From the NCBI GenBank assembly GCA_002269645.1, contig NIVC01002165.1, forward strand, positions 62,001 to 126,000: 64,000 nt of DNA, given 5' to 3'. Below the pieces are notes generated by a model. That model worked only from the letters and a program-made list of their open reading frames with translations, was not told the origin of the DNA and made no database searches. Shown piece after piece: positions 5,757 through 55,084 of this stretch. Numbering within the stretch: position 1 is the first letter of the stretch; each line of letters begins with the position of its first letter. The position numbers and the translations under genes are program-made. This DNA comes from Macrostomum lignano (lineage: Eukaryota).

Positions 5757-6531
5757 GCTGGTAGGTGCCCCTGTCTCTTGGTGGGCGCCCCTGTCTCTTG
5801 GTGGGCGCCCCTGTCTCTTGGTGGGCGCCCCTGTCTCTTGGTTGGCGCCCCTGTCTCTCTGGGTGGGCGCCCCTGTCTCTTGGTTGGCGCCCCTGTCTCT
5901 TGGTGGGCGCCCCCGTCTCTTGGTGGGCGCCCCTGTCTCTTGGTTGGCGCCTCTGTCTCTCTGGGTGGGCGCCCCTGTCTCTTGGTTGGCGCCCCTGTCT
6001 CTTGGTGGGCGCCCCCGTCTCTTGGTGGGCGCCCCTGTCTCTCTGGGTGGGCGCCCCTGTCTCTTGGTTGGCGCCTCTGTCTCTCTGGGTGGGCGCCCCT
6101 GTCTCTTGGTTGGCGCCCCTGTCTCTTGGTGGGCGCCCCCGTCTCTTGGTGGGCGCCCCTGTCTCTTGGTTGGCGCCTCTGTCTCTCTGGGTGGGCGCCC
6201 CTGTCTCTTGGTTGGCGCTTCTGTCTCTCTGGGTGGCCGCCCCTGTCTCTTGGTGGGCGCCCCCGTCTCTTGGTGGGCGCCCCTGTCTCTTGGTTGGCGC
6301 CTCTGTCTCTCTGGGTGGGCGCCCCTGTCTCTTGGTGGGCGCCTCTGTCTCTCTTGGTGGGCGCCTCTGTCTCTTGGTGGGCGCCTCTGTCTCTCTTGGT
6401 TGGCGCCCCTGTCTCTTGGTGGGCGACCCTGTCTCTTGGTGGCCGCCCCTGTCTCTTGGTTGGCGCCCCTGTCTCTTGGTGGGAGCCCCTGTCTCTTGGT
6501 GGCCGCCCCTGTCTCTTGGTGGGAGCCCCTA
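5757..6531. repeat. ~20-bp GC-rich minisatellite, GGTGGGCGCCCCTGTCTCTT (19-22-bp variants)
   Basis: Direct tandem repeats. The overlapping long ORFs in several frames are repeat artefacts. Confidence 0.95.
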
Positions 6532-8179: not shown

Positions 8180-10821
8180 CGCAGGCGCACACTCTAGGCT
8201 GCAAAGAAGGTAAAACGCTCAGTGTGCGCATTGCGGTTTGGACAGCAGCAGAGCGGAGGTTGGGAGAGGAGGCTGGCAGGGGAGATAAGATGGGGAAGGG
8301 GCCTCCATCCCGCCTTTCCTCTTCCGTATCGACCAAGCGGGGCGGAGGTGGGAGGCGGCGGAGAAGGGGGAGAGAGTAGGAGAGAAGGAATGGACAGGCT
8401 GGGCGAGTATTGCGGGATAGCAAAGCCCGACGCTCAGGCGCCCCCTCCTCCGGCACGGCCGTCCCATCCCAGCTCCTTCGCTTAGCCTCAAAAGAGTTTT
8501 CCAAAACGGCACTGCAGGCCTTTCCTCCCCCTTTACTCCCCAATCCGGGCAGCCTACTTTAGTCTAAAAAAGCCGGTCGCGCAGGCTAGTTTGCCCCTCC
8601 CCCACCACCCCGGGATTTTCAACTTTATTCAAATAATCAACTTTGTTTTAACCGGTCGTGCTGTCCCCCCCCCTCCATTAAATTCCGTGGCATCAAACGA
8701 CCCGAAGGCAGAGCAACAGGACGCTTCAAATGTGACCCGTGAGCAGAATAATTGCCAGTCGGACAGTCAAACAGCAAATATTAGAGTTTATAAAAAAGCT
8801 CCCGAGAGTCAGCACTTGGCCAGCTCTGAAAAAGCCACAGGTGAGACAATTTCTTTCTCTGAGATGTTCCTACGCTCATTGCCGCTGGACATAAAAAGTA
8901 AAGACTTATTGACCACAATAATAAGTCACTCCTAAAAACCCCTTCTCTCAAACTCAACTCGACAGCCCTGCTCAATCTGCCCCTCTACGTACTCAAAAAC
9001 CCTTTATCGCTATCGAGCCCAGCTGATCCCAGGCATCGCTTTCATCTTTAATGAGCTTCTACTCCAACCAGACCTGAAAAGTTGGCCGCAGCATCAAACT
9101 TTGCAACAAGTTGATGCGGCATCTAGATGGGGAACGGTTTCTCGGCGCATTAGATCTGATGGGATCCGACAAGATCCGCTCCCCCCCCTAGCCTTCCCGT
9201 GGGACTCAGCCTGTATTGAAGCTTGTAGATGTTGCTAGCAGCATCTGCCTCCCCGAGGCCTCAAAGTTTTCTTTCCACTTCTTTGAGTTCATCTCGGTTG
9301 AAAAAGGCATCAAAACCTGCAGAGCCTTGGTGTTTATATTTACTCGGCGACTATACTCGCCAGTGCTCAACCCACCGCAAAGTTGAGTTCAGTAGACAAA
9401 ACTATAAAAGACGAGATATTGGACTGATAAAGACTCGCTCAAATTTCACTTCTAAGATGCCTTCAAATGGGAAGTTGATAGTATTTTTTACATAATTTTT
9501 TATGTTTACTTTGTACTCTGCTTTTACCAAACATTAAATGTGTTACAGACATGGAGCACTGCTGGCTTCGAGAAAGGAAAGTGTTGTATATCACAGACGC
9601 TTGGGCATAAAGCTCTATAATCTTGCACAGGGGGGGGGAATAAGTCTTGGCGTGACAGGAAATCAAGCCAGCCCTCCGACTCTTAAACCCCACCGCAGTG
9701 GTCGAATCAACTTTGCCCGACCTTTGAGTTGTTTTATTTCACCCGCAAGGCAATCAGAACAAAGTGCAACCCCAGTCTAGAATGGACTTGCTGGCCTCAC
9801 TTTGGTTTCCCGCCTGTCGGCTCTTGAAGCAGAATGCTACTGCGCAGTCTGGAATGAAGCCTTCATTCGAGATTGCCGTCCACCAACTGCTTCTTCTGCT
9901 TCAATATGTTCTTTCTCGGTCTCTTCCCTGGTGCGGACTCTCGTCTCTCCCACACTGCCTCTCAAAGCTAGCCAAGAGTAGCCAGAAACAACAGCAGGTA
10001 AAATTTATTTGCTCCTATTGATTTAACGACACCCGACCCGTCCGCTAGCAGCGCTTTTCCTATAAGCCAGCCCCCCCCCTCATTTTCTGTTGCCGAATTC
10101 CTGCAGGGGAGATGGACCAGGGATTTCTGCACACACGCACAGCCTCGAGCGCCTCGCAAATAGCAGCAATCGAGCTTTGCTGTGCCCGCCCAGCTCCCGG
10201 GCTCAATTAGGGCGGTTCTCACGTCTGCAAGTCTAGCTCTCTATCCTGTTGTGTTCCCCTTCGCATTACTGAGGACTGTTTAGCCGGCTCCTAATTCATT
10301 CAGATTGATTGCCATTCTCCACTGTTTGCCTGCGCTGAGCTGCAGTAGATAGGACGGTTAGAAGGGTTTGTTAGAGCAGCAGCTCATCGCATCCTTCTCG
10401 ACTCATTCTCATCGCTATGGTTTCTGCTTAAAGATGCACCGTCTGAATCTAGAGTAAGCCGTCCTTGTCGCCGCAGAAATCAGAAGGGTAAAAACGGCTA
10501 CTTGAATTGGAAATGACAGCCTGAAACTAAGTGGAGAAAATAGGAAAATTTTTATCAGACACCAATGTGCTTGGGATATGAGAGATGGAGCTTTCCAGCT
10601 GCACCATCCTGTAAAGCCCAATCAACATGCTTCTCTCTTGAGACCTACTCGAAATCTGCTTATGAAATGGAGGAAGTTTCGATTTCTATTAGAGGGTTCA
10701 GACTTCGGATCAGAGGCCCAGGGGCCCAGTGCACCGAGTGCTCCATTGGAATTAAGAATATTTGGAATGGCGCGTCTGGTCTCACTGCCACCTTATCTAT
10801 TCGGTTAGGCCGTCAGTCGCC

Positions 10822-13800
10822 ATGTTCGGCAGTCTATTTGGCGGTGCCAGCAAGCTGCTGGGCTCCGTTGCCGACACCGTTACCATGGCGGTGACGGGTG
10901 ACACGCAGCAGCAGCCAAGTCAACAGAACCAGCAAGCAGCTGGTCGAGGGACAGCACTGTCGCAGCAGCAGCAGCAGCCTCCGCGTCCGCAGCAGCCCGC
11001 AAACAGCTTCTTTCAGAACCGCGGACCCGGGTCCGGTTTTCAGCAGCAGCAGCAGCCTGCGCCGCCCCAGCAGCAGCAACAACAACAGCCACGACTTCAA
11101 CAGCAGCCACAGCAGCAGCAGCAGCAGCAACAACAGCAGCAAAAGCAAATGCAACACTATCAGAATCAGCCACAACAGCAGTTTCAGCAGCAACAGCAAC
11201 TGTCCCAACAACAGCAGCGACTCCAACAACAACAGACTCAACCGTCGTTACAGCAGAGCACTCAGCAGTTTCAGCAGCAACAGCAACCACAGACACAGCA
11301 GCAAACGACGCAGTCGCAGTCACGTCAGCAGCAACAGGTTAATCACCAACAAATTTCAAAACCGCAGCCGCAGCAGCCGCAACAACCCCAACAACCTCAT
11401 CAGCAGACACTGAATCATCAAGCACAGCCACATTATCAGCAGGTCAATCAGCCATTGTTAGAAAATCAGCACCATCGAAGTTCCCAATATCAACAGCAGC
11501 AAAACTCTCCAAGCCAGCAACAGCAACAGCAGAATCCCACGAATCCTCAAGTAAAATCCCAATATAACCAGCAACAGAACCAGCCTTCGTATCAACAGCA
11601 GCAGCTGCAAAACCAATCACATCAACAGCAGCCACAGCAGTCACAGCAAGCAGCGCAGTACCAACCCCAGCAACTGCAGCAACAATCAATGAAACAACAA
11701 CCAATGCAACAACAACCAATGAAACAACAACCAATGCAGCAACAACCAATACCGCAACAACCAATGCAACAACAACCAATGAAACAACAACCAATGCAGC
11801 AACAACCAATACCGCAACAACCAATGCAGCAACAACCAATACCGCAACAACCAATGCAACAACAACCAATGAAACAACAACCAATGCAGCAACAACCAAT
11901 GCCGCAACAAACAATACCGCAACACCCAATGCCGCAGCAACCAATGCAGCAACAACCAATGCAGCAACAACCAATACCGCAACAACCAATACCGCAACAA
12001 CCAATGCCGCAACAACCAATGCCGCAACAACCAATGCCGCAGCAGTCGCTGCCTTCGCAAGCGCAACAGCAGCAGTATCAGCAGCAGTCGTGGCAGCCGT
12101 CCCAGCTTCAGCAGCAGCAGCCTCTGCAACAGCAGCCACAGTACTATCAACAACAGCAGTATCCACAGCAGTTGCAACAGCCTCCAGCACCACAGCAGCC
12201 TCAACAGCCTCCGCCACAGCAGCATCACGATGGTCTCTTTGGAGGCCTGACTTCAAAGATCGCTGAGCTCACTCGGAAAGCTTCCTCTCACGGCAATAGT
12301 ACTGACCACTCAAGTCAGCCACAGCAACAGCAACAGCAGCTAAATCAACAAAACCAATGGCAACAGCCGCAACCTCCTCAATGGCAGCATTCGTCGATGG
12401 CGAACAATCACGGCTACGCTGGTCAGACAGTCAATCAGTTCAGTTTTACGGCTGGTCAAACTGGACAGCAGCAGAATGCTGCCTGGATGAGTTCCGGCGA
12501 CTTCGCTAGCGGCTCTGTCGGGTGGCAACAAAACATTCAACAGCCCCAGACAGCTACAGGCTACGGCTACGAGTGTGCCCAGGCAGCTGCAGGCTCCGCA
12601 CCGACATCGCTTTGGTTTGGTCAATCGGCCGCGACAAATGCGACTTCAAGTGAATACTGGCAGCAGCAGCAACCGCAGCCGCCACTGCTAAATGCCGACA
12701 GTCAGAGCAGCGAGATAGGCGGGATCTATAGCAGCATTAGTATGACCACCGACCCCTACATCAGGGCCGCCATGCGAGGCGAGATGCTTCCCGACGCGCC
12801 CTGCTTTACTGGCGGCAACCGGACCGGCGGAAACTCTTCGTCTTCCTACTTGGAGAGGCTGCTGGCTGGCCACGACAGCCGGAGTCTGGCTCGCCAGTCC
12901 ACCGACATTCTCGACGATGATGATCCAACGCTGACCGCGGCTGCCCGGCACCGGCGCAGCCGATGGTGGCTCGATTCCACCCGGGATGATCCGGCCACAA
13001 CGTCCGGGCGAGTCCGCGCGGCGAGTCCGGCCGTCATCATTGGCCGACGCGGTGGATCAATTGGCGGCCGCTACGCCGACGAGTTTGGCTTGGAGGATGC
13101 GGACCTTGCCAGACCGGCGTCTGCGTTCCAGCGCTACCGGCCCTGGCGCCAACGTCGGGACTGGGAAGACGATCCTGACGCGGTGAGCAGCCCGGCACCG
13201 GCTGGGCGAAGCCGCGGCTATAGCAGAAGCCACGGCTACGACCAGGGCCACGGCTATGGCTACAGCTTTAGCGAGGCGGAAGGAGAGGCGGAGGCTGACC
13301 CGGATACTGAAGCAGATTATCGACGAAGTCATCAACAGCAGCACAGGCGACGACGTCGGCACGACTCGGCACAGGCAGCGTTTCTAGTCCGCGGTGGCGG
13401 CGGCGGGAGCGGCGGCTATGTCGACGATGACTATTACGGCGCCACGTACTTCGTTGGCGGTCGGCACCGAAGAAGCGCGGGCGCTGCGGTCAGATCTGGG
13501 GGATTGTACGGCGGAGAGCGCCGGCAGCACCGGCAAAGTCGCGGCGTCGTTGGAGGCGCATACGACGACGCTCTGGGCGCTGAGCAAGCGGCGGTAGACG
13601 ATATGAACGACGAGGAAGTCCGCGAGTGTCGGGACTTTATGACTCGATCCGTTGGGAAAATGCTCAACCAGGGGTGAGTGAGGCAGTCGGAGACCTATTC
13701 GTTTTTAACTCTCTTTACGACTGTTCCAGAGCCACTTGATGGCACGCAAAGACATCCTCCTCAGCATATCTTACTTTCCAGATCTGAGGAAAAACTGTCA

Positions 13801-18856: not shown

Positions 18857-21800
18857 TGTCGTGCCGTAGCAATAAAGAGGACTCTTCGGTATAAGAGAGT
18901 GCTTAGTTGAGCAGAAGAAAAGAAATGCGACTTCAAGTGATGGCCAAACCGGCCTTTATACTATTGACAAACCACCAACGGCACGTGCCGCCTATAATAT
19001 AGCTCAGTCAACCATTTCTAACTTTAGCCTAGACAATACGTGCCGCGTGCACGCTACGTACATTGGCAATGTGTAAATATTGCCTACACAACGTAAGTCA
19101 GTGAAAGTCAATGAGCTGAGCCAGGCGGCGCCACATCCCCTCACCACCGAGGAGTGAGCCGCTCGGGAGGAACTCCTTTGTTCCCGCGTTCACTACGCCT
19201 CGGGGCCGCCGGCACCTCGATTGCAGCGTTGGGACTGCCCGGCCTCGGGGTGTCAGGCTCGACCGAGGCCGCCTCAGCCGCTGTCTCTGGTCCGACCGCG
19301 GTCGCTTGCCCCTGCGCGGGCGTGACCATCGTGTCGACCGGCAGCGGCCGAATTTGGTCTCGATGGGCAAGGACCGGCCGACTGTAGTGTTGCTGCCAGT
19401 GTTGCTGCCAGCTTGGACCACAAAGCGCGCGGGCTCGGCCGTTGCACTGGAGCTTGGCTGGTAAACGACCGGGGCGTCAATCTCAAAAGTCATTGTCAGC
19501 GGACTCCTCAGCTGTCGACCCATCAGCGCCAACGGGCTGCCCCGGCCGTCGCTCCTCGCCGTCGACCGGTAATTGAGCAGCAGCTTGGCCAGGTATGCTT
19601 CGAAGGAGCCGCGGTGCGCTGCGAATGCCCGGAGCCCGTGTTTCACCGTCTGGACCATGCACTCAGCACAGCCGTTGGACTGCGGATGGTACGGCGGCGA
19701 GTGCACCAGGTTGCACCCAATGCGCTGCAGCCACTGCTGCAGCTCGCCGTCGCAGAATTCTGGCGCGTTGTCAGATACCATGGTCCGGGGCACGCCTAGC
19801 CTCTAGAAGATCACCCGCAGGACCCACAGCGTCGTTCTGGCCGTCCTGTCGGGCACCAGCACCGCCTCCGGCCACCCTGAGTAGGCGTCCACTGCGATGA
19901 GGAGGGAGCCGGCTCCTTGCACGTGCGCGTGGTCGATGTGCACGCGCTGCCACGCCGTGGTCTCCGCCGGCCAGGTGTGCGTCGTGCGGGCCGGCGGCGT
20001 GCGGATCTCCGCGCACTTCACACACTGCTTGATGTATCGCTCGACGTCGTCGCAGTGGCCCGGCCACCAGGCCTCTCGTTTGAGCCGGTTGCGTATCGCC
20101 AGCGCTCCGCAGTGGGTGTCGCCGTGTTCCGCTTGCAGCAGCTGAGGTCGCAGCACGACTGGCGGCACCACCAGGTCACCCAGGCAGATGACGCCGTTCT
20201 CGACGGGCAGCTGCTGGCGCACGCTCTTAAAGGGACGCTCGGCCGCCGAGCAGTTGCTCCAGACGTTGTCGCGGATCCGGCGTTTGATGCCCAGCAGCAC
20301 TGAGTCGGTCGCCGTTGCCTGCTGGATGTCCTCGAGTTTCAGCACGTCAGTCTCCGTCCAGTGAATGACACTCTCGACCACCTCCGGTTGTTCGGGCTTC
20401 TCCTCCAACTCGAGTCTCGACATCGCGTCGACATGTGGGATGCTTCTTCCGCGGACGTACGCGATATCGTTGTCGAAAGCAGCCAGTTGGATGGCCCACC
20501 GCGTGATTCTCGCAGACGTGACCTTCGGAATCTCCTTGGCTGGGCTGAAAATGAACTCCAGCGGCTGATGGTCGCAGTTCAGGGTGAACTTGGCGCCCAG
20601 CAGAAAGTGTCGTGCTCGCTGAGTCGCCCACACGATGGCGAGGGCCTCTCGCTCGATGTTGGAGTAGTTCTGCTCTGCCGTTGTGAGCCGTCGAGACAGG
20701 TAGATCACCGGGTGCTCGTCTTGAGTCAGGATAGCCGAGATGGCTTTCTCGCTGGCGTCTGTTGTCAGTGTGGTGCTCTTCGAAGCGTCAAAGATGCGCA
20801 CTACTGGATACACTGCCGGAGCCTTCTTGAGGTCGTCGAATGCCATCTGCTGATCCTGGCCCCACTTGAATGGTGTCTGGTTGCTTCTCGGCGCTGTGAG
20901 TGGCTCAACCCGCTCAGCGTAGGCCTGAACGTACCGAGCATAGTAGTTCGTGAGCCCCAGGAAGGATTCGAGCTTCTTGCGGTTCGTCGGTGCACGGGTC
21001 TGCTGAACTTTTTCCACCAGCTTCGAGTCGGGCCGAACACCATCAGCGGAGATCTTGTAACCGAGGAATGAAATTGCGGTGCTCCTGAAGACGCACTTAC
21101 GCTCGTTGATCTGCATTCCGACCGCCTTGAGCTTGCGCAACAGTTTCTCGACCTTTTCGTCCAGCTCGGCCTGGGACCTGGCTCCGACACAGACATCGTC
21201 CTGGTAGATGACCAGGTTCGACACCAGACCACCGATCGTTGCTTCCATGGCCGCCTGGAACTGTGCGCTCGCTGTCTTCACGCCTTAGGGCATCCTTGTC
21301 CAACGTAGCAGTCCAGTCGGGGTGTTGATAGTGAGGATTTCCTTTGAAGCCTCATCCAGCTCGAGCTGATTGTACGCGTCTGCCAGGTCGATGGTGCCGA
21401 AGTATGACATTCCCACAAGCTCGCAGAACGCTGTCTCGATGTTGCGCAGCGGATAGGAATCAGCGCAGATTTTGGGGTTCACCCCGATCTTGTAGTCGGC
21501 GCAGATCCTGATGTCGCGGTTCGGCTTCCTCACGACGACGATCGGAGACGCCCATTGACTGCCTCCTGGCGCGACTGACTCCAGAACACCGCTGTCGATG
21601 AGCTTCCGGAGCTTCGTGATGACCAGTGGCTTCAGGTGAATGGGCACTGGTCTCGCCTCGAAGTAACTCGGCCGGAAATTGTCCCTCAGCAGGATGCGCG
21701 CCTTGAAGTCATTCAGCTTCCCGAGGGGCGTCTCCTGCGCTTGCCCCACGTGGTTGAGGCAGACAGCGTCCAGATCGAACTACAGGAGGTCCGTGCCGAG

Positions 21801-23850: not shown

Positions 23851-24583
23851 TGGAGTGTTTCATAGACCACTTGTCAGAATTACAAGTGCGACAAGTGACA
23901 AGTGAGTAGTGACAAGTGCTAGTTACAAGCGGTTTGTTTCATAGACATCGCTTCTTGAAGAGTGAGCAGCGTTTGATTTTCGACAAGCTTGAGTAGTCCC
24001 GCGAGATTTGTCGAACTTGTAACTATCAGATTTCGCTTCGCATGGCAACATGTTCGATTCTGATTCGGACTCTTTGGACGAAACTATTGGCCACGTTGCA
24101 TGGGCAAAGAGACCCAAAATTTTTAAACCACGAATAAACTTTCAATTTGAGGATCGAATTGATTCAATTCATTCATAATTATAGAGGAAAATTCTCCAAA
24201 CAACTCGGCCTTTCTCTCGTTAAGCAGACGCAGTATGGCGTTCTTATTTTCAACCGTGAGAGGCATTCTTACGCTTGCCAGTGGGCCAAACGTGTAAGAT
24301 AGACTCTATGCCAAAGATTATAATTAAATATTGATAAATATCGTCTTTCCTCTATTCAGAACTAGATCATATCCAGGGTCCAACGGAGTCGGCTTTGGCT
24401 GCGCCTGGGACGGACTTGATGTTTGGCCCATAGATATCTAGTTCACTACTCCGTCAGCTTGTAACTTGTCACTAGATTTACAAATCAGTCTATGAAACAA
24501 AAATCTGTAGCACTTGTATTTTTTAACTTGTCATCACTTGTTACTATTCACTTGTAGCTTGTCAAATCTATGAAACACCTCCA
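23851..24583 (+). mobile_element. Internally deleted PIF/Harbinger derivative (MITE-like)
   Basis: Imperfect ~16-bp TIRs (GGAGTGTTTCATAGA / TCTATGAAACACCTCC). ACAAGT subterminal repeats on the left are mirrored as ACTTGT on the right. The remnant MFDSDSDS..AKRPKIFKPRINFQF resembles the Harbinger transposase N-terminus at 28199. Exact ends are uncertain. Confidence 0.6.
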
Positions 24584-24723
24584 GGGGTGTTGCATAGAAT
24601 CGATAAGTCGAAGTTGACAAGTGACAAGTTGACAAGTTACAAGTAAGCCGTGAAGTCCGTTGTATAGACGCTTTACAAACGACAAGCATTTGACATGTGA
24701 CAAGTTACAAGTCCCGTTACAAG

Positions 24724-27700
24724 TACAGCGCGCAGGAGCTGCGTGTAAGGGTTAAAAAAATCTAGTACAAAGCGACCTGCTTTATTGTGTTCACCATTAC
24801 TTGGTAAGTATTTTTCTAGAGTTTTTAAAAAATCTGCCGATGTCAAGCTCCACAATCAGTAAATTATTTAATTAGCATTAATTGCATGGCGAAAGGTCTA
24901 AACAAGTCATGATTTTTAACCAAGGACCATTGATTTTTTAAATTAAAGGCAAAATACACACCCATGAGTGCGTACCCCCAAGCCCCAAGGCCCACAGTGT
25001 ACATGCATGACGAATAGCGAAAGCTGAGGCGCCGTACACCCCTAAGTGCGCATGATCAACCTCTATCAGTGTAGCGTCAGTTGCGTCACCGAAAAAATGA
25101 AGTGCATTTAGCGTCACTCTCAGACAGGCAGATTTTTTGTTTTTGAGCTATATAAATGATTAATTTAGCATAAATCAGCTCATCTCAGCATTTAGGAATT
25201 GAAAAGCCTTGAACTGAACACCACCATGCCAAACTACTCAAAATCTCACGAAGAGAACCGGCTGAAGGTCTGCCTTGTGTGCTTTAAGCGCGGGTCAGGC
25301 ATGCAGCGCATTGGCAAAGCAGCTCTACCTCGCATCCAGCGGTACTTTTATGCAAACTACGATTTGAAGAACGAGTTTCTCCCAGCTGCTCTGTGTGCTC
25401 GATGCCAGGGTCTGCTGCTGGATATTGAACGGGGGAATCGAACTTCTGAAGCTCTTCCTGCCCCTTTTGATTTTTCAAAAGTCGTACCGACAAAGGAAAC
25501 AAGGGGCCACCCGAAGTGCAGCTGCTGTCTCTGTGAGATTGCCAGAGAAAGTCCAATCGGCAAAGGACTCGGCACCTGGAAGCCGGAGCCGCATCGCCTT
25601 GGCAGACCGAAAACTGATTCGCCAAACAAGGAGGTGCCACCTGCTCGTCCCATCACCATCTGCCAGAGATGTCACTCCACCATTGGCAGGGGTCTTAGCC
25701 ACACCTGTACGCAATCTCGCTGGCTAAATAACATCTGCTCTGAGCTGTCACGTGATCCGCGTGTTTCAGAAATTCATGCTAGTGACGTCCTCAAAGCCAA
25801 GTTAACAGACGCAGGTGGCGATTCGCCTATTCGGCTGGCAACTCGAGGCCGGCCAATCACGCTAAGCGTGTCCGCTCAGAGTAGCAGGTGCTCCGCGGGT
25901 GCATTTGGTGACATATCAGTGCCGGCTAGTGAGATTGCCAGGATGCAGGATGCAATCGGTTTGAGTGGTCGGCAAACCAGACAGGCGGCCCAGTTCTTCC
26001 GTGAGTGGAAGGGTCGCAGTTCGATCGAGCCAAACCTCCTGCATCGCCTGGCAGAATTGAATAGCGAGTTGGATCCATTTTATGCAACAGAGTCAGTCCA
26101 AGTCCGTTGCAGCACGGGCGAATTTGAAACGCGGACTGTTGTGTTCTGCTCCAACGTCTCTGGCTTGGTGGGCTACGTGCTGGCACGGCGGAGAATGGAT
26201 CCTGATCCTGGCAGCTTCCTGCTTAAGATTGGTATTGATGGAGGACGCGGCTTTTTTAAAGTTTGCATGACATTGGTCCGGTCCGGGGAGCAGTCATCTG
26301 TTCTACTAGGCGGTGTCACCGAGGCCGGCAGCAGCCCTTTTGCCGAAGGTGGTGTAAAGAAGCTATTAATTATCGCAGCAGTTGAAAAAGTACCGGAGTA
26401 CTATGAGAACGTGCAAACTGTGCTCAATCTGCTGAACCTAGAAGACGTGTCTTTCTGCAGCTCCGTGGACATGAAACTTGCAAATGTGCTTCTTGGACTG
26501 CAGAGCGCCAGCAGTGCCCATCCCTGCCCGTGGTGCGAGACGCCTCGAAAAGAGTTCGCCAATCCCCATCGCAGTGTCAGATTGCGGACTTTTGGCTCTA
26601 TTCGCAGCCAAGCTGCCCAGTATCAGCGCATCGAGGGGCAACGAAGCTCAAAGCCATCAGGAGAGCCATTCCACAACTGCATCAGGCAACCACTGCTGAA
26701 TTGGCCAGACAGTTCAAACACGCTAGAAGCTGTGCCACCCATGGAGCTCCACCTGCTGCTAGGCCTTGTCAACAGGCTGTACGACGAGCTTGAGCAGCGC
26801 CTGACAGCATTGGGTCCCGACGGAGTCCGTGCTGCACAGTGGGCTGAGGCTCTTCACGTACGGCGCTCACCGTATCATGGCAGCCAGTTCAATGGCAATG
26901 AGTGCGACCGACTGCTTGGTGGAGTCGACAGCCTGCGCCAGATCCTCGCTGACCACGCTGCCTTCAGCGGAGTGCCTGTCGCCCATGCATTCAGCTGCCT
27001 GCGAGCTGTCCAGCAGAAGTGCTTCGGCCAACAACTGCTTGAAGGCTACGATACAGCAGTCAAAGAGTTCGAGGCGGCATACCACGCTCTGGCCATCAAC
27101 ATCACTCCGAAGGCCCATGCCCTCATTGACCACGTGCCGCAGTTTTTGGAAGCGATGGCAGTACAATATGGGTGTCGCCGAGGCCTTGGGTTTTGGTCTG
27201 AGCAGGCGATGGAGTCGGCACATCGCGACTTCAGCGACATGTGGAGTCAACGCTTCAAGGTGGATGCAACTCATCCGGAGTATGCTCGGCGTTTGCTCAG
27301 GTGCATCACGGTGTACAGCTCGCGGCATCTGTAAAATGGGCTACTGTGCTGTAAGCAGTTCTGTTGAAGGTGCAATAATATCCGAGTTACTTTAAAACCG
27401 ATTGGTGCACCAGAATTCTTGTTTTGACAAATGGAGGACAAATTCAGGTTTTTTGTTTAATTTTTGGTGAGGTTACAGTTGGAGCTCTCTATTTTGAGGT
27501 CTGGTCATAGACAAATCAACCCCTGAAACTTCACAGCAAGGCTTCTCATGTCATGCAGTGTTTTAGACTCTCATGGCACGAAATAGTCTATGGACATTCT
27601 GCCACAAATTTTCTCTCGGCTTTACTCCAACTGTGGCTACACCAAGAACTAAATTAATTTTCTACAATTTGAAAAGACATCTATTACTATGTGTAACTTA

Positions 27701-28049
27701 CTTTCTATTTATTTAACACTATAAATTGTTTCCAATTCTAGGCTATGCACACGAATTTATACAATAAACTGTCACAAAAATTATATAATACACTATACAT
27801 AACATGCATGTAATAGTGCAACGACCCTAGCTTAAAATATCAATGGTCCTTGGATAAAAATCATGACTTGTTTAGACCTTTCGCCATGCAATTAATGCTA
27901 ATTAAATAATTTACTGATTGTGGAGCTTGACATCGGCAGATTTTTTAAAAACTCTAGAAAAATACTTACCAAGTAATGGTGAACACAATAAAGCAGGTCG
28001 CTTTGTACTAGATTTTTTTAACCCTTACACGCAGCTCCTGCGCGCTGTG
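24724..28049 (+). mobile_element. Chapaev/Transib-related (RAG1-core-like) DNA transposon, apparently complete
   Basis: ~218-bp TIRs (24724-~24941 and ~27832-28049) with about 3 mismatches. Right end reads CACAG on the minus strand; left end reads TACAG. 3-bp TSD AAG at 24721-23 and 28050-52. One long intact ORF. Confidence 0.9.
25226..27334 (+). CDS. RAG1-like DDE transposase with N-terminal Chapa-like zinc finger (702 aa)
   Basis: Kozak context CCACCATG at 25226. N-terminus has H-x7-C-x2-C...CxxC...CxCxxC. Core motifs KIGIDGG, VDMKLANVLLGLQSASSAHPCPWC, PPMELHLLLG, FNGNECDRLL, ITPKAHALIDHVP and GFWSEQAMES are co-linear with RAG1 motifs around D600, D708, C727/C730, H937/H942 and E962. Confidence 0.88.
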   Translation: MPNYSKSHEENRLKVCLVCFKRGSGMQRIGKAALPRIQRYFYANYDLKNEFLPAALCARCQGLLLDIERGNRTSEALPAPFDFSKVVPTKETRGHPKCSCCLCEIARESPIGKGLGTWKPEPHRLGRPKTDSPNKEVPPARPITICQRCHSTIGRGLSHTCTQSRWLNNICSELSRDPRVSEIHASDVLKAKLTDAGGDSPIRLATRGRPITLSVSAQSSRCSAGAFGDISVPASEIARMQDAIGLSGRQTRQAAQFFREWKGRSSIEPNLLHRLAELNSELDPFYATESVQVRCSTGEFETRTVVFCSNVSGLVGYVLARRRMDPDPGSFLLKIGIDGGRGFFKVCMTLVRSGEQSSVLLGGVTEAGSSPFAEGGVKKLLIIAAVEKVPEYYENVQTVLNLLNLEDVSFCSSVDMKLANVLLGLQSASSAHPCPWCETPRKEFANPHRSVRLRTFGSIRSQAAQYQRIEGQRSSKPSGEPFHNCIRQPLLNWPDSSNTLEAVPPMELHLLLGLVNRLYDELEQRLTALGPDGVRAAQWAEALHVRRSPYHGSQFNGNECDRLLGGVDSLRQILADHAAFSGVPVAHAFSCLRAVQQKCFGQQLLEGYDTAVKEFEAAYHALAINITPKAHALIDHVPQFLEAMAVQYGCRRGLGFWSEQAMESAHRDFSDMWSQRFKVDATHPEYARRLLRCITVYSSRHL

Positions 28050-28198
28050 AAGGGGTGGTTCGTTGCATAGAATGTATAACTTGAGAAGTTTTCCTGCTAT
28101 TCGCGAGTGACAAGTTGCGTAGTAAAAACTGACCCCGCGAGCTTACTTATAACTTACAAGCTGTCAAAGTCTGGCCCAAGTTTGACTGACTCAGCGTT

Positions 28199-28917
28199 AT
28201 GTTCTATGACGAGTCGTCCGATGAGGATTCCGACGCATCTGCGCCCGGCAATAAACGACCGCGTACATTCAAGTACAGGATCAACTTTGACTTCGATGTG
28301 GCCTATGGTGATCATAAATCTAGGTTTCGACTTCGCGAGGAACACATTGACGAGTTTGCACCCTACTTGGAGCTGACCTCGAACATTCAACGGGTTGTAA
28401 CTTCGCCCTGACTCCGTCGCAGCAGATCCGAGTTGCGCTCCGTTATCTCGCCACAGGGGCGAATTTCTCTGCGATTGGCGACGCTCATGGTGTGCACAAG
28501 TCAACTGTGAGTAAGGCTCTGCATCGTTTTGTCTCTTTTCCAAACCTGGTGAAGTGGCCGGAAGATCAAGCTCAGATGCTGCAGTTGACACACGAGTTCC
28601 GAGACATTGCCCAGATGCTATGTGTTGTCGGCTGCATTGACGGCACGCACGTCAGGATACGCAAGCCACACGAGAACCCGGACCAGTTCATCAACCGTCA
28701 CGGCTACGCGTCGATCAACGCCATGCTTACTTGCGAATGCGATGCTCGCTACCGTTTTCTGTACGTGTCGGCCAAATGTCCGGGTGCCGTCAACGACGCC
28801 CGGGTGTTTCGTATGAGCTCACTTCAAGATCTGCTTGCTGCGGGTTGGCGCCCGTTCCCTAACGGATATCTCCTCGGCGACAGTGGCTACCCGAATAGAA
28901 ACTATATACTGTTGTGA
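28199..28917 (+). pseudogene. Harbinger (HARBI1-like) transposase, frameshifted and 3'-truncated
   Basis: QIRVALRYLATG..DAHGVHKSTVS, GCIDGTHVRI, INAMLTCECD, PGAVNDARVF and LLGDSGYP are spread over more than one frame. Confidence 0.85.
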
Positions 28918-32032: not shown

Positions 32033-33130
32033 CTAGAGGAAGTTCCTAAGCTTTGGCTGCTTCGGCAGTTCATTCATCGACTCATTCAGTCGCCGTGGAT
32101 TGGCACATGTGCCAGGCATCTTGGCACATATGAGAAGCAGTGGGTTTACCATTCTTGGCGTTTTTCTTCTGTGCCACAACGCCCACGGTGATATCTGCCA
32201 TGCGCGCGAGTTCGTCTCGCCGATACTGCACCAGTGTTCGGCCAGCGCGGGCCTCCACGGTTGGGTTGATGAAGACGTCGCAATCTTCACCAAGTTCTTG
32301 CTTAATTGCCGCTTTCCATCGCGAGATGGCACTTTCAACTGGCAGGAAAGGATTGTAGCGAGGGAGCCGCCGGAATTCAGCAATACCAATATCCTCATTC
32401 AGCTCAGCGTCGTTATGGCTGCTCACGTTGTCAAAGACCAGATAGACCACTTGCCCTGGGCAAGCTGCCTGCACGATTTGATGATTCGTGATTTGCAAAT
32501 ACTCTGCAAACCGATCCTTGGTCATGCCGCTGGTATAGACCTGATAGTGGACAAAACCAAGTTGAGGAGACATAGCTAGACAAATGGTGATGCGTGTGCC
32601 CTTCTGGTTTGCGATTCGTCGATACGCTCTTTGACCTTGAACAGCCCGTCCCTGCTGCCGCCGCATCCAACTGTCAAAACCAAACTCATCAATGTACACC
32701 TTTGGCGTATTGACAATTTCGGGGGAGCACCACCAGTGGCGATAGGCCTCTCTCTCCGCTAGAATAGCCGATGAGTTTTTCTCGGCCGGAGCATCACGAA
32801 CTAGCTTTAAAAAATACAAGATACCTTCAAGAGGTCGACTTAATGTTGACAAGCCACCAATTGGCTTGTTAAGAAGCCGTGCTTGCAAACGAGCATTGAT
32901 GTTCTCCAATATCAGTTGCCTTCCCGCAACACACAGCAGTACTGTCCCATCTCAACGTCAAGCTTTGTATATGTCCTACCGCCTCTCGTCCTCTTCTCAC
33001 GCCAGCCTGTTCCAATTAATGATTGAGTATGCGTCGTCCTTTTGATATTCCTCAGAAATTGTCAGAAACAGAAGCATGAGTTGACAAATTCAACAGTTGT
33101 GAATTTTTTCGTGACGCATTGGAATCGCGT
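32033..33130 (-). pseudogene. IS630/Tc1-mariner transposase remnant
   Basis: VYIDEFGFDSWMRR..GRA..KGTRITICLA, VFDNVSSH and LPRYNPFL-PVE. The N-terminus is disrupted. Related to the intact copy at 42216. Confidence 0.85.
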
Positions 33131-41939: not shown

Positions 41940-43704
41940 TTGGTTTTGTCAGCCTAACTGAGAATAAAGCCATCCAAAGTGAGAATCCTGCCTACGCTGA
42001 CTGCGAAGGGCCTGGCTGCGTGCAGCCTTAGTCTATGGGCCATAGACTATAAAGGATAAGCAAAGTGATAAAAGCCATCCAATGTGAGAATCGATTGGTC
42101 TATGCGTCGTATTCTTTTATTTTTATACCTTCTGAGCCATATGACTAGCCAATAGCTTGAACGGAATAACGGAAACAGGAACACACTGGATGATACAGTA
42201 CAGTAAAGTAAAGAGTTAAAATAGCCGTCCCTCAATGCACTGCCCAAAGAGTCGTCTGCAATGCAGGTCCCACGCGGCAGCCTTCCCAGCAGTGACTGTG
42301 TCGTCAATCGCTTCGCGCGCCTCCCTCTCTAACAGCATGAATCGCCACTCCTCTTGGTTGACGCCATCTGGAGCAACGGCCTCCTCGTTGACTAGTCCAG
42401 CGTCTGCCAGGCGGCTTTTGATCCGTGCCTTCAGCGCACTGTTGGCCAGTTCCGATGGGTTGAGGAAGGGTGAGTATGGCGGCAGGATGCGAATCGAGAT
42501 CTTCTCTTGTAGTTGCTCCGGCACCCTGGCTCCCCTGTGGAAGTGCGGGCCGTCCATCACAACCAGCCAGCTTCCATCGGCATCGAGCTCATTGCATCGC
42601 TCTGCCAAGAAGTTGATGAACTCCTGGAAGCGAACCAGCGTCTGACCACCCCGCTGCACGGTCGAGTGCACCAGGCCAAACTCTGCGCAGATAGCCATGC
42701 AGACGGTCACGTTTGGGCCTCTTTGTGTCGTCACAGTCCGCTTAACAGGGCGACCCCTGATAGCACGGCCTTGCGATCGCCGTAGCCACAAGTTTAATCC
42801 AGTTTCGTCCAAATAGACGATGTGTACGGAGGCGTCAAGGTGCAGCATGAAGTTGGCATATTCTCTCCGGGCCTCGATGTTTTCAGGCAGATTGCAGCTC
42901 GCTCTGGTGTCACTGCCCTTCGTTCCGAGCTTCAGGGTGTATAGCATCCCTTGGAGCATCCGATCGACCGTCTTGTACCCCACTTGAGGCTTCTCCGGAA
43001 ACTGTGCAGCCATGCAGTTGGCCATCTCTTTTAACGTTAGGAAGGGGTTCTCTTGCAGCTTCTGGTTCAGAAATTGCCGCATTTCATCATCAACTTTAAG
43101 AAGTCGTTGACCACCGCGAGGAAGCGCATTAGTTCTTCCTTCTAGGCGATGCTGACGGGCAATTCTATAGGCAGTTGAGACAGGCAGTTGCAGGACGGCT
43201 GCTGCTTCCCTTAGTGAGCTTCCATTTTCAATGGCCGCAATGAGTCGCTGGCGGTCCACAGATGAGGCGGGCATTTTTATTGCAGTGGTGAAGACTGAAC
43301 TCTGTTAATTCTAAGTGTTGGATAAATAGGCAAGAAAGCAACGAGACTGTGGGTGATGGAGTAAGCAGTGATGGAGGAGTTGCGCTTGGATGAGTGGAGA
43401 GAGCTGGGGGAAAGAGAAAAAGCGATCGATTCTCACATTGGATGCCTTTTTAAAACTTTGCTTGTCCTTTATAGTCTATTGATTTTTATAGTTAGAGATG
43501 GCTCATAGACTAGGCTGGACGCAGCTAGGCCCTTCGTATTCAGCGTAGGCAGGATTCTCACATTGGATGGCTTTTTCACTTTGCTTATCCTTTATAGTCT
43601 ATGGCCCATATACTAAGGCTGCACGCAGCCAGGCCCTTCGCAGTCAGCGTAGGCAGGATTCTCACTTTGGATGGCTTTATTCTCAGTTAGGCTGACAAAA
43701 CCAA
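41940..43704 (-). mobile_element. IS630/Tc1-mariner transposon with long IR/DR-type TIRs, apparently intact
   Basis: TA TSD at 41938-39 and 43705-06. ~152-bp TIRs at 41940-42092 and 43553-43704 are nearly identical. Internal direct repeats AAGCCATCCAAWGTGAGAATC. Confidence 0.93.
42216..43274 (-). CDS. IS630/Tc1-family transposase (352 aa, DD33E)
   Basis: N-terminal HTH (SSLREAAAVLQLPVSTAYRI), then VYLDETG, VVMDGPHFH and LPPYSPFLNPSE. Uninterrupted ORF. Confidence 0.92.
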   Translation of the reverse strand: MPASSVDRQRLIAAIENGSSLREAAAVLQLPVSTAYRIARQHRLEGRTNALPRGGQRLLKVDDEMRQFLNQKLQENPFLTLKEMANCMAAQFPEKPQVGYKTVDRMLQGMLYTLKLGTKGSDTRASCNLPENIEARREYANFMLHLDASVHIVYLDETGLNLWLRRSQGRAIRGRPVKRTVTTQRGPNVTVCMAICAEFGLVHSTVQRGGQTLVRFQEFINFLAERCNELDADGSWLVVMDGPHFHRGARVPEQLQEKISIRILPPYSPFLNPSELANSALKARIKSRLADAGLVNEEAVAPDGVNQEEWRFMLLEREAREAIDDTVTAGKAAAWDLHCRRLFGQCIEGRLF

Positions 43705-46704: not shown

Positions 46705-47757
46705 ATGAATTTCCTCTATCTTCATAACCTCCTACAAGACGGTCCGCATCGGGAGCCACGAGTTTACCTCGATAGACGGAATTTCGCTGTCAGTGCTGAA
46801 TTCACACAAAGATTCCGACTGAGTCCAGCTACTGCGGAGCATCTTGTGCAAAGAATTGATCCTCAGCTGGTGCCTTCTACGCAGCGAAGTTGTGCTCTGT
46901 CCCCACGGGAACAAGTCTTGACTGCTCTGCGCTTCTACGCAACGAATAGCTTTTATCACGTGCTACGGGATGCGCATGGCCCATCGACTGCATCCGTCTG
47001 CCGTGCAGTGCGCAATGTGTCACAGGCTGTGAATGAGCAGCTCTTCCAGGAGCAGGTGCGCTGGCCCGAGGATTCGCACCGAATCGGCCGTGACTTTTTT
47101 CGAGTCGCTCGCATGCCATCCGTGTGCGGCCTGGTGGATGGAACGTTGGTCCCAATCATTGCCCCAAGAGTCAATGAGGAGCAATTTGTGGACTGTAAGG
47201 GCCAACACTCATTGAACGTGATGCTCGTGTCAGGTCCCCAACACCAATTCCTGGCATGTAACGCGTCCTGGCCGGGAAGTGTGAACGACGTTCGCGTGCT
47301 GCGTAATAGCAGCGTGTATGATGCGTTCGAGAACGCAGGATTTCGACCATTTCACGATGCAGTCTTATTGGGAGACTCAATCTACCGATGCCTTGAATGG
47401 CTGGTCCCACCTGTCCACGGTGACAATCTCCCGGTTGCATCTCGGCGGTTCAACCGGGCACATCGAGTGACGCGCTCCTCGGTCGAGCGGAGCATTGGCC
47501 TACTGAAGCTAAGGTTTCCGTGTCTGCGGATGCTGCGCGTGGCAACCCCCGAGTTGGCTGGTGAGATTGTGAAGACCTGCGTCACACTACACAATCTCTG
47601 CATAAGCATCGAGGGAGAAGTTGACGACAACATCGTTCAGAAATACAACATCACGGAGGAAGAAGACGCTGGAGGACATCATGCCGTGGCAGCTCACGTT
47701 GCTCCTCACGGAGCTCGCCGACGGGACAGGCTTGTGGCCGGTTTCGCGGCACAATGA
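46705..47757 (+). CDS. Harbinger (HARBI1-like) DDE transposase, 350 aa
   Basis: RFRLS..LRFYATNSF, GLVDGTLVPI, SLNVMLV, WPGSVND, LLGDSIY, RSSVERSIGLLKLRF, LHNLCI. No stops. Confidence 0.93.
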   Translation: MNFLYLHNLLQDGPHREPRVYLDRRNFAVSAEFTQRFRLSPATAEHLVQRIDPQLVPSTQRSCALSPREQVLTALRFYATNSFYHVLRDAHGPSTASVCRAVRNVSQAVNEQLFQEQVRWPEDSHRIGRDFFRVARMPSVCGLVDGTLVPIIAPRVNEEQFVDCKGQHSLNVMLVSGPQHQFLACNASWPGSVNDVRVLRNSSVYDAFENAGFRPFHDAVLLGDSIYRCLEWLVPPVHGDNLPVASRRFNRAHRVTRSSVERSIGLLKLRFPCLRMLRVATPELAGEIVKTCVTLHNLCISIEGEVDDNIVQKYNITEEEDAGGHHAVAAHVAPHGARRRDRLVAGFAAQ

Positions 47758-48816: not shown

Positions 48817-49193
48817 GGCAGAATAGTCACAGACGGGCCGATCCAGCGACAACCAGAGAATGATGTACGCGTCTCCTTTGGTATGTTTATTACAAAAAGA
48901 ACTTTTTTTGTTCTTTTAGAGTTTAGAACTTCTGCTTCAATAAAGCGGGCGCGAGACACGATAAAGTATGAAGTAGGGCTTTCCTGACGCAGAAAAGGCA
49001 CAAATCAATAATCGTCTTAGTGACGCCTCATGTCTATGGCAGAGACCCACGCTAGCATGCTTTTAGCCACGGCTTACTAGCCGTTGCTTTTTAGCATGGT
49101 GTTGTGAAAACACTTTTTCAGACGCGTCTAAATAGCACGGCTAAACTAGCTGCTGCTAACTGCTAACTGCTAGCTGTTTCGTGAAATCGGCCC

Positions 49194-53127: not shown

Positions 53128-55084
53128 TGTGTGCTTGCAACGCCACTGTTATGTCTTGAAGAAGCCACACACGATGATTGTAGCGATGGTATGCGAGTCT
53201 GGCTCGTCTTAAATATGATCAGCTCTGATCTTTCTCGTTTTATTATCATAAGCTCATCGACTTGGATTGCTTCACGACCTGTAGCCATAGCTTTTCATTA
53301 GAGTCTATGGCTCGACATGGCTATTCGTACGTAGCAATAATAATAAATAAAACTCTGCCTTTATACTTAAGGCTAGTATGCAACACGCAGAATCGGTGAA
53401 ACGCCTCGGTCTTTGCGAACGGTCCCAGTTAAGGTTGTTCCTCTGGTCAGTAGGAACTTGGCCAGTCGCACTGATGAAAACCAACTGTCCCAAAAGACCC
53501 GAAATCCAAGGTCCAGAATGTCGCGACAAAGTTCTACGACGACTCTCTCACTGATTGAGAGCTGCGGCATATTGTTGCCGAACTGTTCATTCGCAATGGT
53601 TGTTGAATGTATTAGACAGTTCCACATATAGCCTGTAGAAGACTCTGCAAGGCAGTGCATCTTGATGCCAAACTTGGCTCTCTTGTTGGGCATGTACTGC
53701 TTAAAAAGCAGCCTCCCCTTGTAGAGCAGCAGCGCTTCATCAACGGCAATGCTTTGACCGGGCAGGTAGCTGTTCTTGCAAACTGTCCGGATAATGTCTA
53801 GGAACGGCCTGATCTTGCACAAGGGATCATCAGCGTCGAAGTCAATATAGTCATAGCAACGCAGCCATGTAATGATTTGTTGAAACCGCGAGCAGGGGAG
53901 CATCTTCTTGCTTTGAAAGTAGGAATGGAAGTAGAACGGGTCCGTGGACCAGTAAGCCGCCAGCTCCAGTTTCTGTACAACTCCAGTAAACAGTATAACG
54001 CCGATCACCTTTTCATCATCTCCGTGTTCTTCTTGAAACTTGGCAATATCCAGCTGCACTCTCTTTTTTGTCCACATGCACATCTGAAGCAGAAAGTCAT
54101 CGGGTAAAAATTGTTCGAAAATGACTGTCCAGCCGTCGTCAACATCAGCGGGTACAGAGAATCCCGAATTGACTCCGCTTGCCCCGAGAAACTCAGGAAG
54201 AGAATTAGCTCGAGCATCGGTCTCTGGAGTTACTGATCGCCAATCATCGTACATCATTCTCTGATCATCTTTCTCCGGTCCATCGTTGTCTGCTTGATTT
54301 TCGCCACCGTCCTCTTCCTCGCTCTCAGCAGTGACAAATGATTCATCGCTCCACTCATCGCTCGATTCGCTGTCGAGGCCCAAGTTTCGCAAGGCTTGCT
54401 TGGCTGTTTGCCGTCGCTGTCTGACCGCTTGCATTGTAAGATTTGGTAAGCTGGGATGGTGAGCTAAGGAAGCACCAGTAAAAATTCTTGCAGTTGACTT
54501 TTCATGCCTGTATTTTCTCTCTCTTGACTTTTTCTAGCTTGGCCATGCACAATCCTCCAGTCAAAGATGCCACTTTTCCTGTTGAGAAAGTGTTTTCTTG
54601 CTTGTGCATAATAGAGCAACTGTTTTGGAGTTCGATGTGTACAGCGCAGAATCAAAATTGTCTATGGCATGCATTCTTGCCATCTGGTAAGATAGACATG
54701 TGGGGAAGGAGTTCTGTCGTAGACAAGTGGTTAAACTCTGCTCAATGCACGTTAAACATTTTTATTCCCTAGTATATTTCAATCTCGCGGCTTAGTGACT
54801 CGCGAATAGTACACTGTACATGTTGCCATAGACAAATGAATAATTGCTCAGCCGTTGACGGCTCTTTCAAGTAAAAGTTCGTTAAACTAAAAGTTTTTCT
54901 TCAACTCCAACAATTAGTCAGTCTAAACAGGGAAATATGCTGTCACCGAGAAGGACATATCCTGGAAAAGGTCTCCACTGTTCCGTCTGGAATACTGTAA
55001 AAAGACTGCTATTTCACCAAATTCTAGCGTCGCTGACGCTGGCCAGCCATGAGGCGTTGCAATAATATAATTAATTACCTGGGC

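Follow-up and report, generated by a model that had tools for sequence, protein, structure and literature searches.

The subject of this analysis is a transposable element at positions 24724-28049 of a 64-kb window, the whole stretch of 64,000 nucleotides that was analysed, from contig NIVC01002165.1 of the flatworm Macrostomum lignano. The element is most probably a young, single-gene, cut-and-paste transposon of the Chapaev clade within the Transib/CMC assemblage. Its 39-bp tips would form the recognition and cleavage signal, with a bipartite layout of the Transib type. The Transib/CMC assemblage is the group from which the RAG1 protein and the recombination signal sequence (RSS) descend. 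RSS-like ends are a hallmark of the Transib/Chapaev group that was published in 2005 and do not constitute a new phenomenon.

The element is 3326 bp in length and carries one long open reading frame (ORF) between terminal inverted repeats (TIRs) of 218 nt. The two arms are identical at 215 of the 218 positions, the mismatches being at positions 1, 196 and 212. Each tip consists of a heptamer, a spacer and a nonamer-like A-tract, as follows.

24724..24941, forward strand: left TIR, 218 nt, from the inverted-repeat search
27832..28049, reverse strand: right TIR, 218 nt, from the inverted-repeat search
24724..24730, forward strand: left heptamer TACAGCG, with T at position 1, where the right arm and all relatives have C
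24731..24753, forward strand: spacer CGCAGGAGCTGCGTGTAAGGGTT, 23 nt, identical in both arms
24754..24762, forward strand: left nonamer-like A-tract AAAAAAATC, by sequence reading
28043-28049, reverse strand: right heptamer CACAGCG, by sequence reading
28020-28042, reverse strand: right spacer, the same 23 nt as on the left
28011-28019, reverse strand: right nonamer AAAAAAATC, by sequence reading

The left end (24724-24762, forward strand) thus reads TACAGCG + CGCAGGAGCTGCGTGTAAGGGTT + AAAAAAATC, and the right end (28049-28011, reverse strand) reads CACAGCG + the same 23-nt spacer + AAAAAAATC. Positions 24724-24762 carry the T at position 1 and are therefore the left end. An earlier note on this DNA had described two ends that are identical except for this T, and the reading of both arms confirmed it. 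Compared with the RSS consensus CACAGTG/ACAAAAACC, the right end agrees at 6/7 heptamer and 7/9 nonamer positions with 23-nt spacing, the same values that the note had given, and it has the consensus base at every universally required RSS position (heptamer 1-3, nonamer 5-6). A 12-spacer reading was found at neither end. Both spacers measure 23 nt, in line with the symmetric 23/23 arrangement that had been claimed.

The 38-mer of the tip occurs exactly twice in the window and not once across 100 shuffles. A scan for RSS-like sites (at least 6/7 in the heptamer, at least 7/9 in the nonamer, spacer of 12 or 23) returned two sites in the whole window, where 0.27 are expected per shuffled 64-kb window, and a bare RSS match is therefore only mildly unusual. 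The likeness goes beyond chance because it is placed at the very tip of the TIR and is conserved in relatives. The second RSS-like string, CACATTG+12+ACAAAAGCA at 30471 on the reverse strand (6/7 and 7/9), stands off any repeat boundary and is at chance level.

The ends of related families were taken as verified where both arms were recovered, or where several copies with diverging flanks were available. Six families, including that of the window, have verified ends. They are given below under working labels, with the protein identity to the window ORF, the end sequence and the duplication flanking the insertion.

Window family, M. lignano: reference (locus L009, 99%); CACAGCG+23+AAAAAAATC; a 3-bp AAG repeat, doubtful as a duplication, at the window copy only
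P0009, M. lignano, 5 copies: 33% identity; CACGGTT+23+AAAAAAATG; duplication of 4 bp
P0002, M. lignano: 49% identity; CACACAT+22+AAAATAAAG; duplication TCTCC
Element of the mosquito Uranotaenia lowii: 31% identity; CACGGTG, A9 at 28-36 (equivalent to +23 AAAAAATTG); duplication TAGAG
L047, metagenome contig: 33% identity; CACAGGT+22+AAAAAAAT[T/C]; duplication TTAT
P0006, marine metagenome contigs with at least 6 different flanks: 37% identity; CACAGTT+23+ACGAATTGT

The run of A residues starts at position 28-31 in five of the six families. With L047 excluded, mean pairwise identity among the remaining five falls from 0.67 in the heptamer to 0.47 at positions 8-16 and to 0.25 at positions 17-27. 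It rises to 0.60 at positions 31-39 and stands at 0.33 beyond. In the same five families the fraction of A is 0.64 at positions 31-39 against 0.18-0.30 elsewhere. The first 9 nt of the spacer are semi-conserved among families, the rest is not.

Ends were incomplete at loci L020, L021, L022, L024-L027, L029, L036 and L038, where contigs were too short or degraded. The single ends CACAGTG+23+AAAAAATTG at L021 and CACAGCA+23+AAAAACCCT at L020 were not counted as evidence. Loci L001-L003 (M. lignano NIVC01000927, NIVC01002186 and NIVC01003948) represent the same insertion with identical flanks, as expected of duplicated or uncollapsed regions of the assembly, and were therefore counted once. Copy counts in the M. 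lignano assembly overstate the number of independent insertions. In the P0002 family, the right arm has an internal CACAGCA+13+AAAAAAATC, seen on the reverse strand at L001 ~6120-6160 and ~75 bp inside the true end, which was considered as a '12-RSS' and rejected. It is probably a chance occurrence, since the left arm has no CAC there.

The layout has a precedent in Transib, whose consensus end is CACAATG + ~23 bp + AAAAAAATC over 21 families (Kapitonov & Jurka 2005, PMC1131882). Most Transib families carry RSS23-like sequences on both ends (PMC1131882). The numbering in that study (38 bp, with position 34 as nonamer position 5) implies a spacer of 22 bp, and a later review gives 20-22 bp (PMC8355894). 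The 23 bp of the M. lignano element are therefore within +/-1 of the consensus. The window nonamer is identical to that of the Transib consensus at 9/9 positions. The correctly spaced nonamer-like tract that the earlier note had singled out as notable is thus the consensus already published for Transib (PMC1131882). The ends of HzTransib have been reported to show 'little or none' of the nonamer similarity (PMC4840297), and RAGL-B ends are without a nonamer (PMC10462144). A description of Chapaev ends as heptamer-spacer-nonamer was not found in the accessible literature, outside which the primary Chapaev descriptions, in Repbase Reports, lie.

The protein encoded between the TIRs has the features of a RAG1-like transposase. 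The remaining ORFs inside the element are short overlaps in other frames. The ORF and its core motifs are located as follows.

25226..27334, forward strand: transposase ORF, 702 amino acids (aa), intact, no introns needed, from the ORF list; the start MPNYSKSHEENR is kept in homologues
26237..26239, forward strand: catalytic D338 in GIDGG, invariant in 71 sequences
26468..26470, forward strand: catalytic D415 in DMKLAN, aligned with the aspartate of RAG1 'YDEK' (mouse D708)
26525..26536, forward strand: C(2)C motif CPWC, C434/C437, aligned with RAG1 CTLC
27116..27133, forward strand: H(4)H motif HALIDH, H631/H636, aligned with RAG1 H..LAH (H-x4-H)
27212..27214, forward strand: catalytic E663 in EQAMESAH, aligned with the glutamate of RAG1 'GNES' (mouse E962)

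The pair L508-H509 is conserved and aligns with the LH of RAG1. Residues D338, D415, E663, C437, H509, H631 and H636 are invariant throughout the 71-sequence alignment. Searches of Pfam and of the Protein Data Bank (PDB) with the ORF as a single sequence gave no match. A profile of 18 homologues matched RAG1 only in the PDB (E=0.023), and the profile of 71 sequences matched only the amphioxus RAG1L/BbRAGL (6b40; 2.2e-4) and RAG1 (1.3e-3). An AlphaFold2 model of the transposase has a mean predicted local distance difference test (pLDDT) score of 79. The best 43 Foldseek matches of this model in the PDB are all RAG1, with E down to 9e-13, followed by BbRAGL (2e-8), HzTransib (1e-4) and the hAT transposase Hermes (8e-3). 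The RAG1-core motifs that the earlier note had recognized in the ORF are thus borne out by the profile alignments and by the Foldseek matches. As single-sequence searches were blank, the relationship to RAG1 is revealed through the family profiles and the structure model only.

An exhaustive hidden Markov model search returned 11,025 clusters (50% identity) at E<=1e-3 and 1,631 at E<=1e-30, most of them full-length. A word-indexed protein search recovers 18-19 members of the same family. The family is mostly unannotated and without any Pfam model. DUF1280, a family from C. elegans, is matched weakly in Pfam by two of the 18 homologues in the smaller profile (E=0.018), and it could be a relative of the transposase that was domesticated or has decayed.

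The N-terminus of the transposase contains a second feature shared with RAG1, outside the core.

25247..25546, forward strand: Chapa/NZD-like two-zinc finger, aa 8-107, identified from invariant columns, BLASTP and hhalign

The putative ligands H8, C16, C19, C57, C60, C98, C100 and C103 are invariant or near-invariant, and may be grouped as H8 with C98/C100/C103 and as C16/C19/C57/C60. The N-terminus matches the Chapa domain of Chapaev-1_HM by BLASTP (E=4e-8), and the family profile matches the Chapa domain of Chapaev-2_HM by hhalign (E=6.8e-13, probability 97.8%). The reference sequences were taken from Additional file 5 of PMC4411706 and carry noise from optical character recognition. Compared directly, human RAG1 gives a weak hhalign match (E=0.004, probability 8%), which nevertheless falls on the right cysteines. 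The N-terminus had no match among PDB sequences, and the isolated N-terminal model returned only non-significant ZAD domains from the PDB, with 7POK first. The same weak neighbour, 7POK/ZAD, has been reported for the NZD of RAG1 (Hong et al. 2026). Two family members have weak Pfam matches to zf-AD (E=0.04).

The Chapa domain was described by Kapitonov & Koonin (2015) as common to the RAG1 N-terminus, TransibSU, Chapaev and Chapaev3 (PMC4411706), and the same conclusion was reached for the 'NZD' of RAG1 by Hong et al. (2026). With direct N-terminal similarity so weak, the link to RAG1 runs via the Chapa family and not directly. The earlier note had spoken of a RAG1-N-terminal-like zinc finger. 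This holds in so far as the Chapa/NZD family is aligned with the RAG1 N-terminus in the literature.

Among the cited hallmarks of Chapaev are C(2)C, LH and H(4)H motifs (PMC4079192; PMC12730594), a set that the transposase carries together with the catalytic triad. Chapaev termini are 5'-CAC...GTG-3'. The right end of the element begins with CAC and the left end with TAC, and CAC is found in all six related families with verified ends. From these sequence features, the element is filed under the Chapaev clade, in the subgroup of Chapaev-1/2/5_HM and Chapaev-1_AA.

Between the Chapa domain and the core there are two short motifs which may bind DNA.

25601..25612, forward strand: GRPK, AT-hook-like, aa 126-129, in a linker predicted to be disordered and immediately following the Chapa domain
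25661..25708, forward strand: CCHC zinc knuckle CQRCHSTIGRGLSHTC, aa 146-161, with C146, C149, G156, H159 and C161 at least 90% conserved

The prediction of disorder follows from pLDDT values below 50 for aa 111-140. Of the 71 members, 50 have G, 42 have R and 39 have P in the respective columns of the GRP motif, and a canonical AT-hook such as KRGRPR or KKGRPRK occurs in many. In the nonamer-binding domain (NBD) of RAG1 it is a GRPR/K motif that contacts the A/T part of the nonamer (PMC10462144). After the Chapa domain, GRPK is found in the window element, GRPA in P0002, PGRPRK in P0009 and KRGRPR in the U. lowii element, each with an A-tract at ~+23. P0006 has neither the GRP motif nor the A-tract at that position. 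The two features co-vary in all five families where both are readable (5/5). By analogy with RAG1, this suggests that the GRP motif is a candidate reader of the A-tract through minor-groove recognition.

The knuckle has the pattern C-x2-C-x6-G-x2-H-x-C and is placed between the Chapa domain and the core across the 71 members. Its ligand order recalls the CCGHC DNA clamp in the C-terminal tails of RAG1L; spacing and position differ. Further candidates for DNA binding, besides the CCHC knuckle, are a second RGRP (aa 207-210) and a helical segment (163-196). Residues 160-230 were considered as an NBD of the RAG1 type and rejected. RGRP 207-210 lies ~30 residues before the DDBD-like segment, against ~80 in RAG1, and the two are therefore not colinear.

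The A-tract motif is repeated inside the element.

24827..24838, forward strand: inner motif AAAAAATCTGCC, a 12-mer at +104 in the left TIR, homologous to AAAAAAATCTACCGAG at ~+105 in P0002
27935-27946, reverse strand: inner motif AAAAAATCTGCC at +104 in the right TIR
25127..25138, reverse strand: inverted third copy of AAAAAATCTGCC, beyond the TIR and ~90 bp ahead of the start codon, also present in L009

It is possible that these inner copies are extra sites for transposase binding or for autoregulation. They also speak for the likeliest of the rival explanations, in which A6-7TC is a generic subterminal repeat for binding or bending, as in CACTA/En-Spm-like elements. The +23 spacing would then be unconstrained and the likeness to a 23-RSS superficial. 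Both the second copy at +104 in each arm and the inverted third copy at 25127-25138 agree with this, as do the inner A7-8TC motif that is conserved at ~+103-113 in the P0002 and U. lowii families and the A-tracts of P0006, found only at +89 and +144. Against it, the outer tract of five families starts inside a 4-bp interval (28-31), although tract lengths differ and the spacers are unrelated, whereas the inner copies are far more variable in position (+89 to +144). On balance a generic repeat is the less likely explanation.

In a second rival explanation, the element would belong not to Chapaev but to canonical Transib or to the RAG-like (RAGL) transposons. The nonamer agrees 9/9 with the Transib consensus, two relatives are flanked by duplications of 5 bp (TCTCC and TAGAG), a length typical of Transib/RAG, and the fold is nearer to RAG1 and BbRAGL than to HzTransib. 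However, the canonical Transib transposase consists of the core only, without the N-terminal Chapa/NZD domain (PMC4411706; Hong et al. 2026; PMC8355894), and this domain is present here. The duplications of two other relatives are of 4 bp, and HzTransib is unmatched by the profile of 71 sequences at E<=10. A RAG2-like (kelch) gene was not found between the TIRs, where 3326 bp with a single 702-aa ORF leave no room for one. With no second gene, the element is not a RAG1L/RAG2L transposon. The 'RAG1-like transposon' of the earlier note is accordingly replaced by a single-gene element of the Chapaev clade, and a Transib or RAGL identity is considered improbable.

The last rival, a chance low-complexity run at +23 with a coincidental RSS likeness, is very improbable: the nonamer is a simple A-run, 0.27 RSS-like sites are expected per shuffled window and an unrelated match exists at 30471 (reverse strand), but the tract lies at the exact TIR tip on both arms, the A-run recurs at 28-31 in five of six families (one of them only 33% identical in protein) with positions 17-27 down at the random level of 0.25, and 21 Transib families have this very nonamer as their published consensus. 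The earlier note had left chance open; an A-tract conserved over diverged spacers rules it out, and a chance origin of the tract at ~+23 can be regarded as excluded on these alignments.

The preferred reading, a young Chapaev-clade transposon with a bipartite end signal, has several points to answer. The note had proposed to check whether the A-tract stays at +23 while the spacer diverges. This holds in five of the six families and fails in P0006, which has no A-tract at +23, and the +23 rule is not universal among relatives. The repetition of A6-7TC inside the TIRs means that strict spacing may not matter. The apparent link between the GRP motif and the A-tract is one of co-occurrence in five families, and whereas the motif of RAG1 heads a helical NBD, that of the present family is found within a disordered linker. 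The clade assignment draws on the N-terminal domain and the motifs, not on a phylogeny of the core, and is to be read as provisional in that sense.

The insertion itself adds to these points. When 3-, 4- and 5-bp readings and shifted termini were tried on both copies, only a 3-bp AAG repeat fitted the window copy, and a clean duplication was not found at L009. The terminal bases are altered in both copies. All of the above weigh against the reading to some degree. The 5-bp repeat that is the trait of canonical Transib flanks neither the window copy nor L009, and no empty insertion site was found within the window. The duplication lengths in relatives are 4 bp (P0009, L047) or 5 bp (P0002, U. 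lowii), in agreement with a recent report that the length is labile in this lineage.

The evidence for youth comes from the second copy. The ORF is 99% identical to the M. lignano hypothetical protein BOX15_Mlig010790g22, which is encoded by the copy at locus L009. This copy is 98.9% identical to that of the window and has different flanks, and the family is therefore young. The ends of L009 (2501-2507 and 5866-5872) read CTCAGCG and TACAGCG. Positions 1-2 thus vary over the four ends of the two copies, and CAC, which is essential in RAG and Transib, is kept by the right end of the window copy only. This variation of the terminal bases could be due to decay, assembly error or something systematic. 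As the left end of the window copy has T for C at heptamer position 1, its cleavage is probably crippled.

If the element is a Chapaev transposon of this kind, its transposition may be pictured by analogy with HzTransib and RAG. Two transposase subunits would pair the identical 23/23 ends and nick the DNA at the border of flank and heptamer, leaving a hairpin on the flanking DNA. The nick-hairpin mechanism has been demonstrated on HzTransib. The blunt ends would then be integrated with a stagger of 3-5 bp. Less certain is the reading of the A-tract, which may occur via the minor groove by the GRP/AT-hook motif after the Chapa domain, like the GGRPR of the RAG1 NBD. If the GRP motif does read the A-tract, the A6-7TC copies at +104 and near the promoter would be extra binding sites.

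The insertion flanks are repetitive, with AGGGGTG(GTTC)GTTGCATAGAAT on both sides (24581-24600 and 28051-28075), and the left flank at 24600-24723 is rich in (G/T)ACAAGT repeats. For these reasons the element probably landed in another repeat or a tandem array. The window as a whole is a transposon-dense region with ORFs of long terminal repeat (LTR) retroelement, Tc1/mariner, Harbinger and piggyBac type. The following lie around the element.

28492-28917, forward strand: Harbinger/PIF-type DDE_Tnp_4 ORF fragment, just 440 bp away from the element's right end
46705-47757, forward strand: Harbinger/PIF-type DDE_Tnp_4 transposase ORF
19803-21281, 49156-50481, 42216-43274, 32082-32909 and 53373-54434, reverse strand: LTR pol fragments (reverse transcriptase/RNase H/integrase), two Tc1/mariner-like DDE_3 and a piggyBac-like DDE_Tnp_1_7

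A 971-aa ORF at 10762-13677 (forward strand) had no Pfam match at E<=0.001.

In the accessible literature the combination of an NBD-GRPR/K motif and an AT-rich nonamer is a speciality of RAG1/RAGL-A, and Chapaev ends are not so described. It is tentatively proposed that a heptamer, a ~23-bp spacer and an A-tract nonamer, together with a GRP(K/R) AT-hook, could be conserved in the Chapaev branch as well as in Transib ends and RAG/RAGL-A. If true, reading of the nonamer by GRP, an N-terminal finger of the RAG1 type and RSS-like ends would already be combined in a RAG2-less transposon. The combination would either predate the split of Chapaev, Transib and RAG or represent a striking convergence. 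The pairing of GRP/AT-hook and A-tract offers a simple, testable model for nonamer recognition before the RAG1 nonamer-binding domain. In other respects the flatworm case repeats the observation by which RAG1 and the RSS were first linked to Transib, and therefore contributes a further taxon and family but no new concept. The large and mostly unannotated family (11,025 clusters) adds value. The young copy with its intact ORF is a convenient RAG2-independent, Chapa-bearing enzyme, whose ends have a heptamer and a clean nonamer.

Several known systems can be set beside the element. PflRAGL-A of Ptychodera flava (PMC10462144) shares the heptamer, a conserved block beside it, an AT-rich nonamer-like tract and a GRPR/K motif. 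RAG2L, asymmetric spacers (with a 10-bp difference), 5-bp duplications and the CCGHC C-terminal tail are present in PflRAGL-A only. HzTransib of Helicoverpa zea (PDB 6PQN/6PQY) is likewise a single-protein, RAG1-like transposase with a CAC heptamer at its ends, but lacks the Chapa domain, and its fold match (E=1e-4) is much weaker than that to RAG1.

Transib in general resembles the element in its CAC heptamer, variable ~22-23 bp spacer, identical nonamer, RSS23-like sequences on both ends and single-gene transposase. It differs in the heptamer, CACAATG against CACAGCG here (5/7), and in a nonamer that starts at 30 against 31. In contrast to Transib, the window element has 218-nt TIRs with an inner motif, a Chapa finger and no 5-bp duplication at the window copy.

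Vertebrate RAG1 and the 23-RSS share with the element the core fold, the catalytic triad, the zinc ligands, the 6/7 and 7/9 match at 23 bp, and a GRP(K/R) motif together with an A-rich nonamer. Unlike the vertebrate system, the window element is without a RAG2 partner, 12/23 asymmetry and a RING finger. To our knowledge, the flatworm host has no V(D)J system.

Chapaev transposons were reportedly described by Kapitonov and Jurka in 2007. The 5-bp duplications of two related families are unlike Chapaev. The subgroup of Chapaev-1/2/5_HM and Chapaev-1_AA agrees with the element in the C(2)C, LH and H(4)H motifs, in CAC termini, tentatively in duplications of 3-4 bp in part of the wider family, and in having no RING finger after the Chapa domain. 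It also shares the Chapa pattern itself, HEENR.KVC..C ... P..C..C ... TR...C.C..C..AR (PMC4411706).

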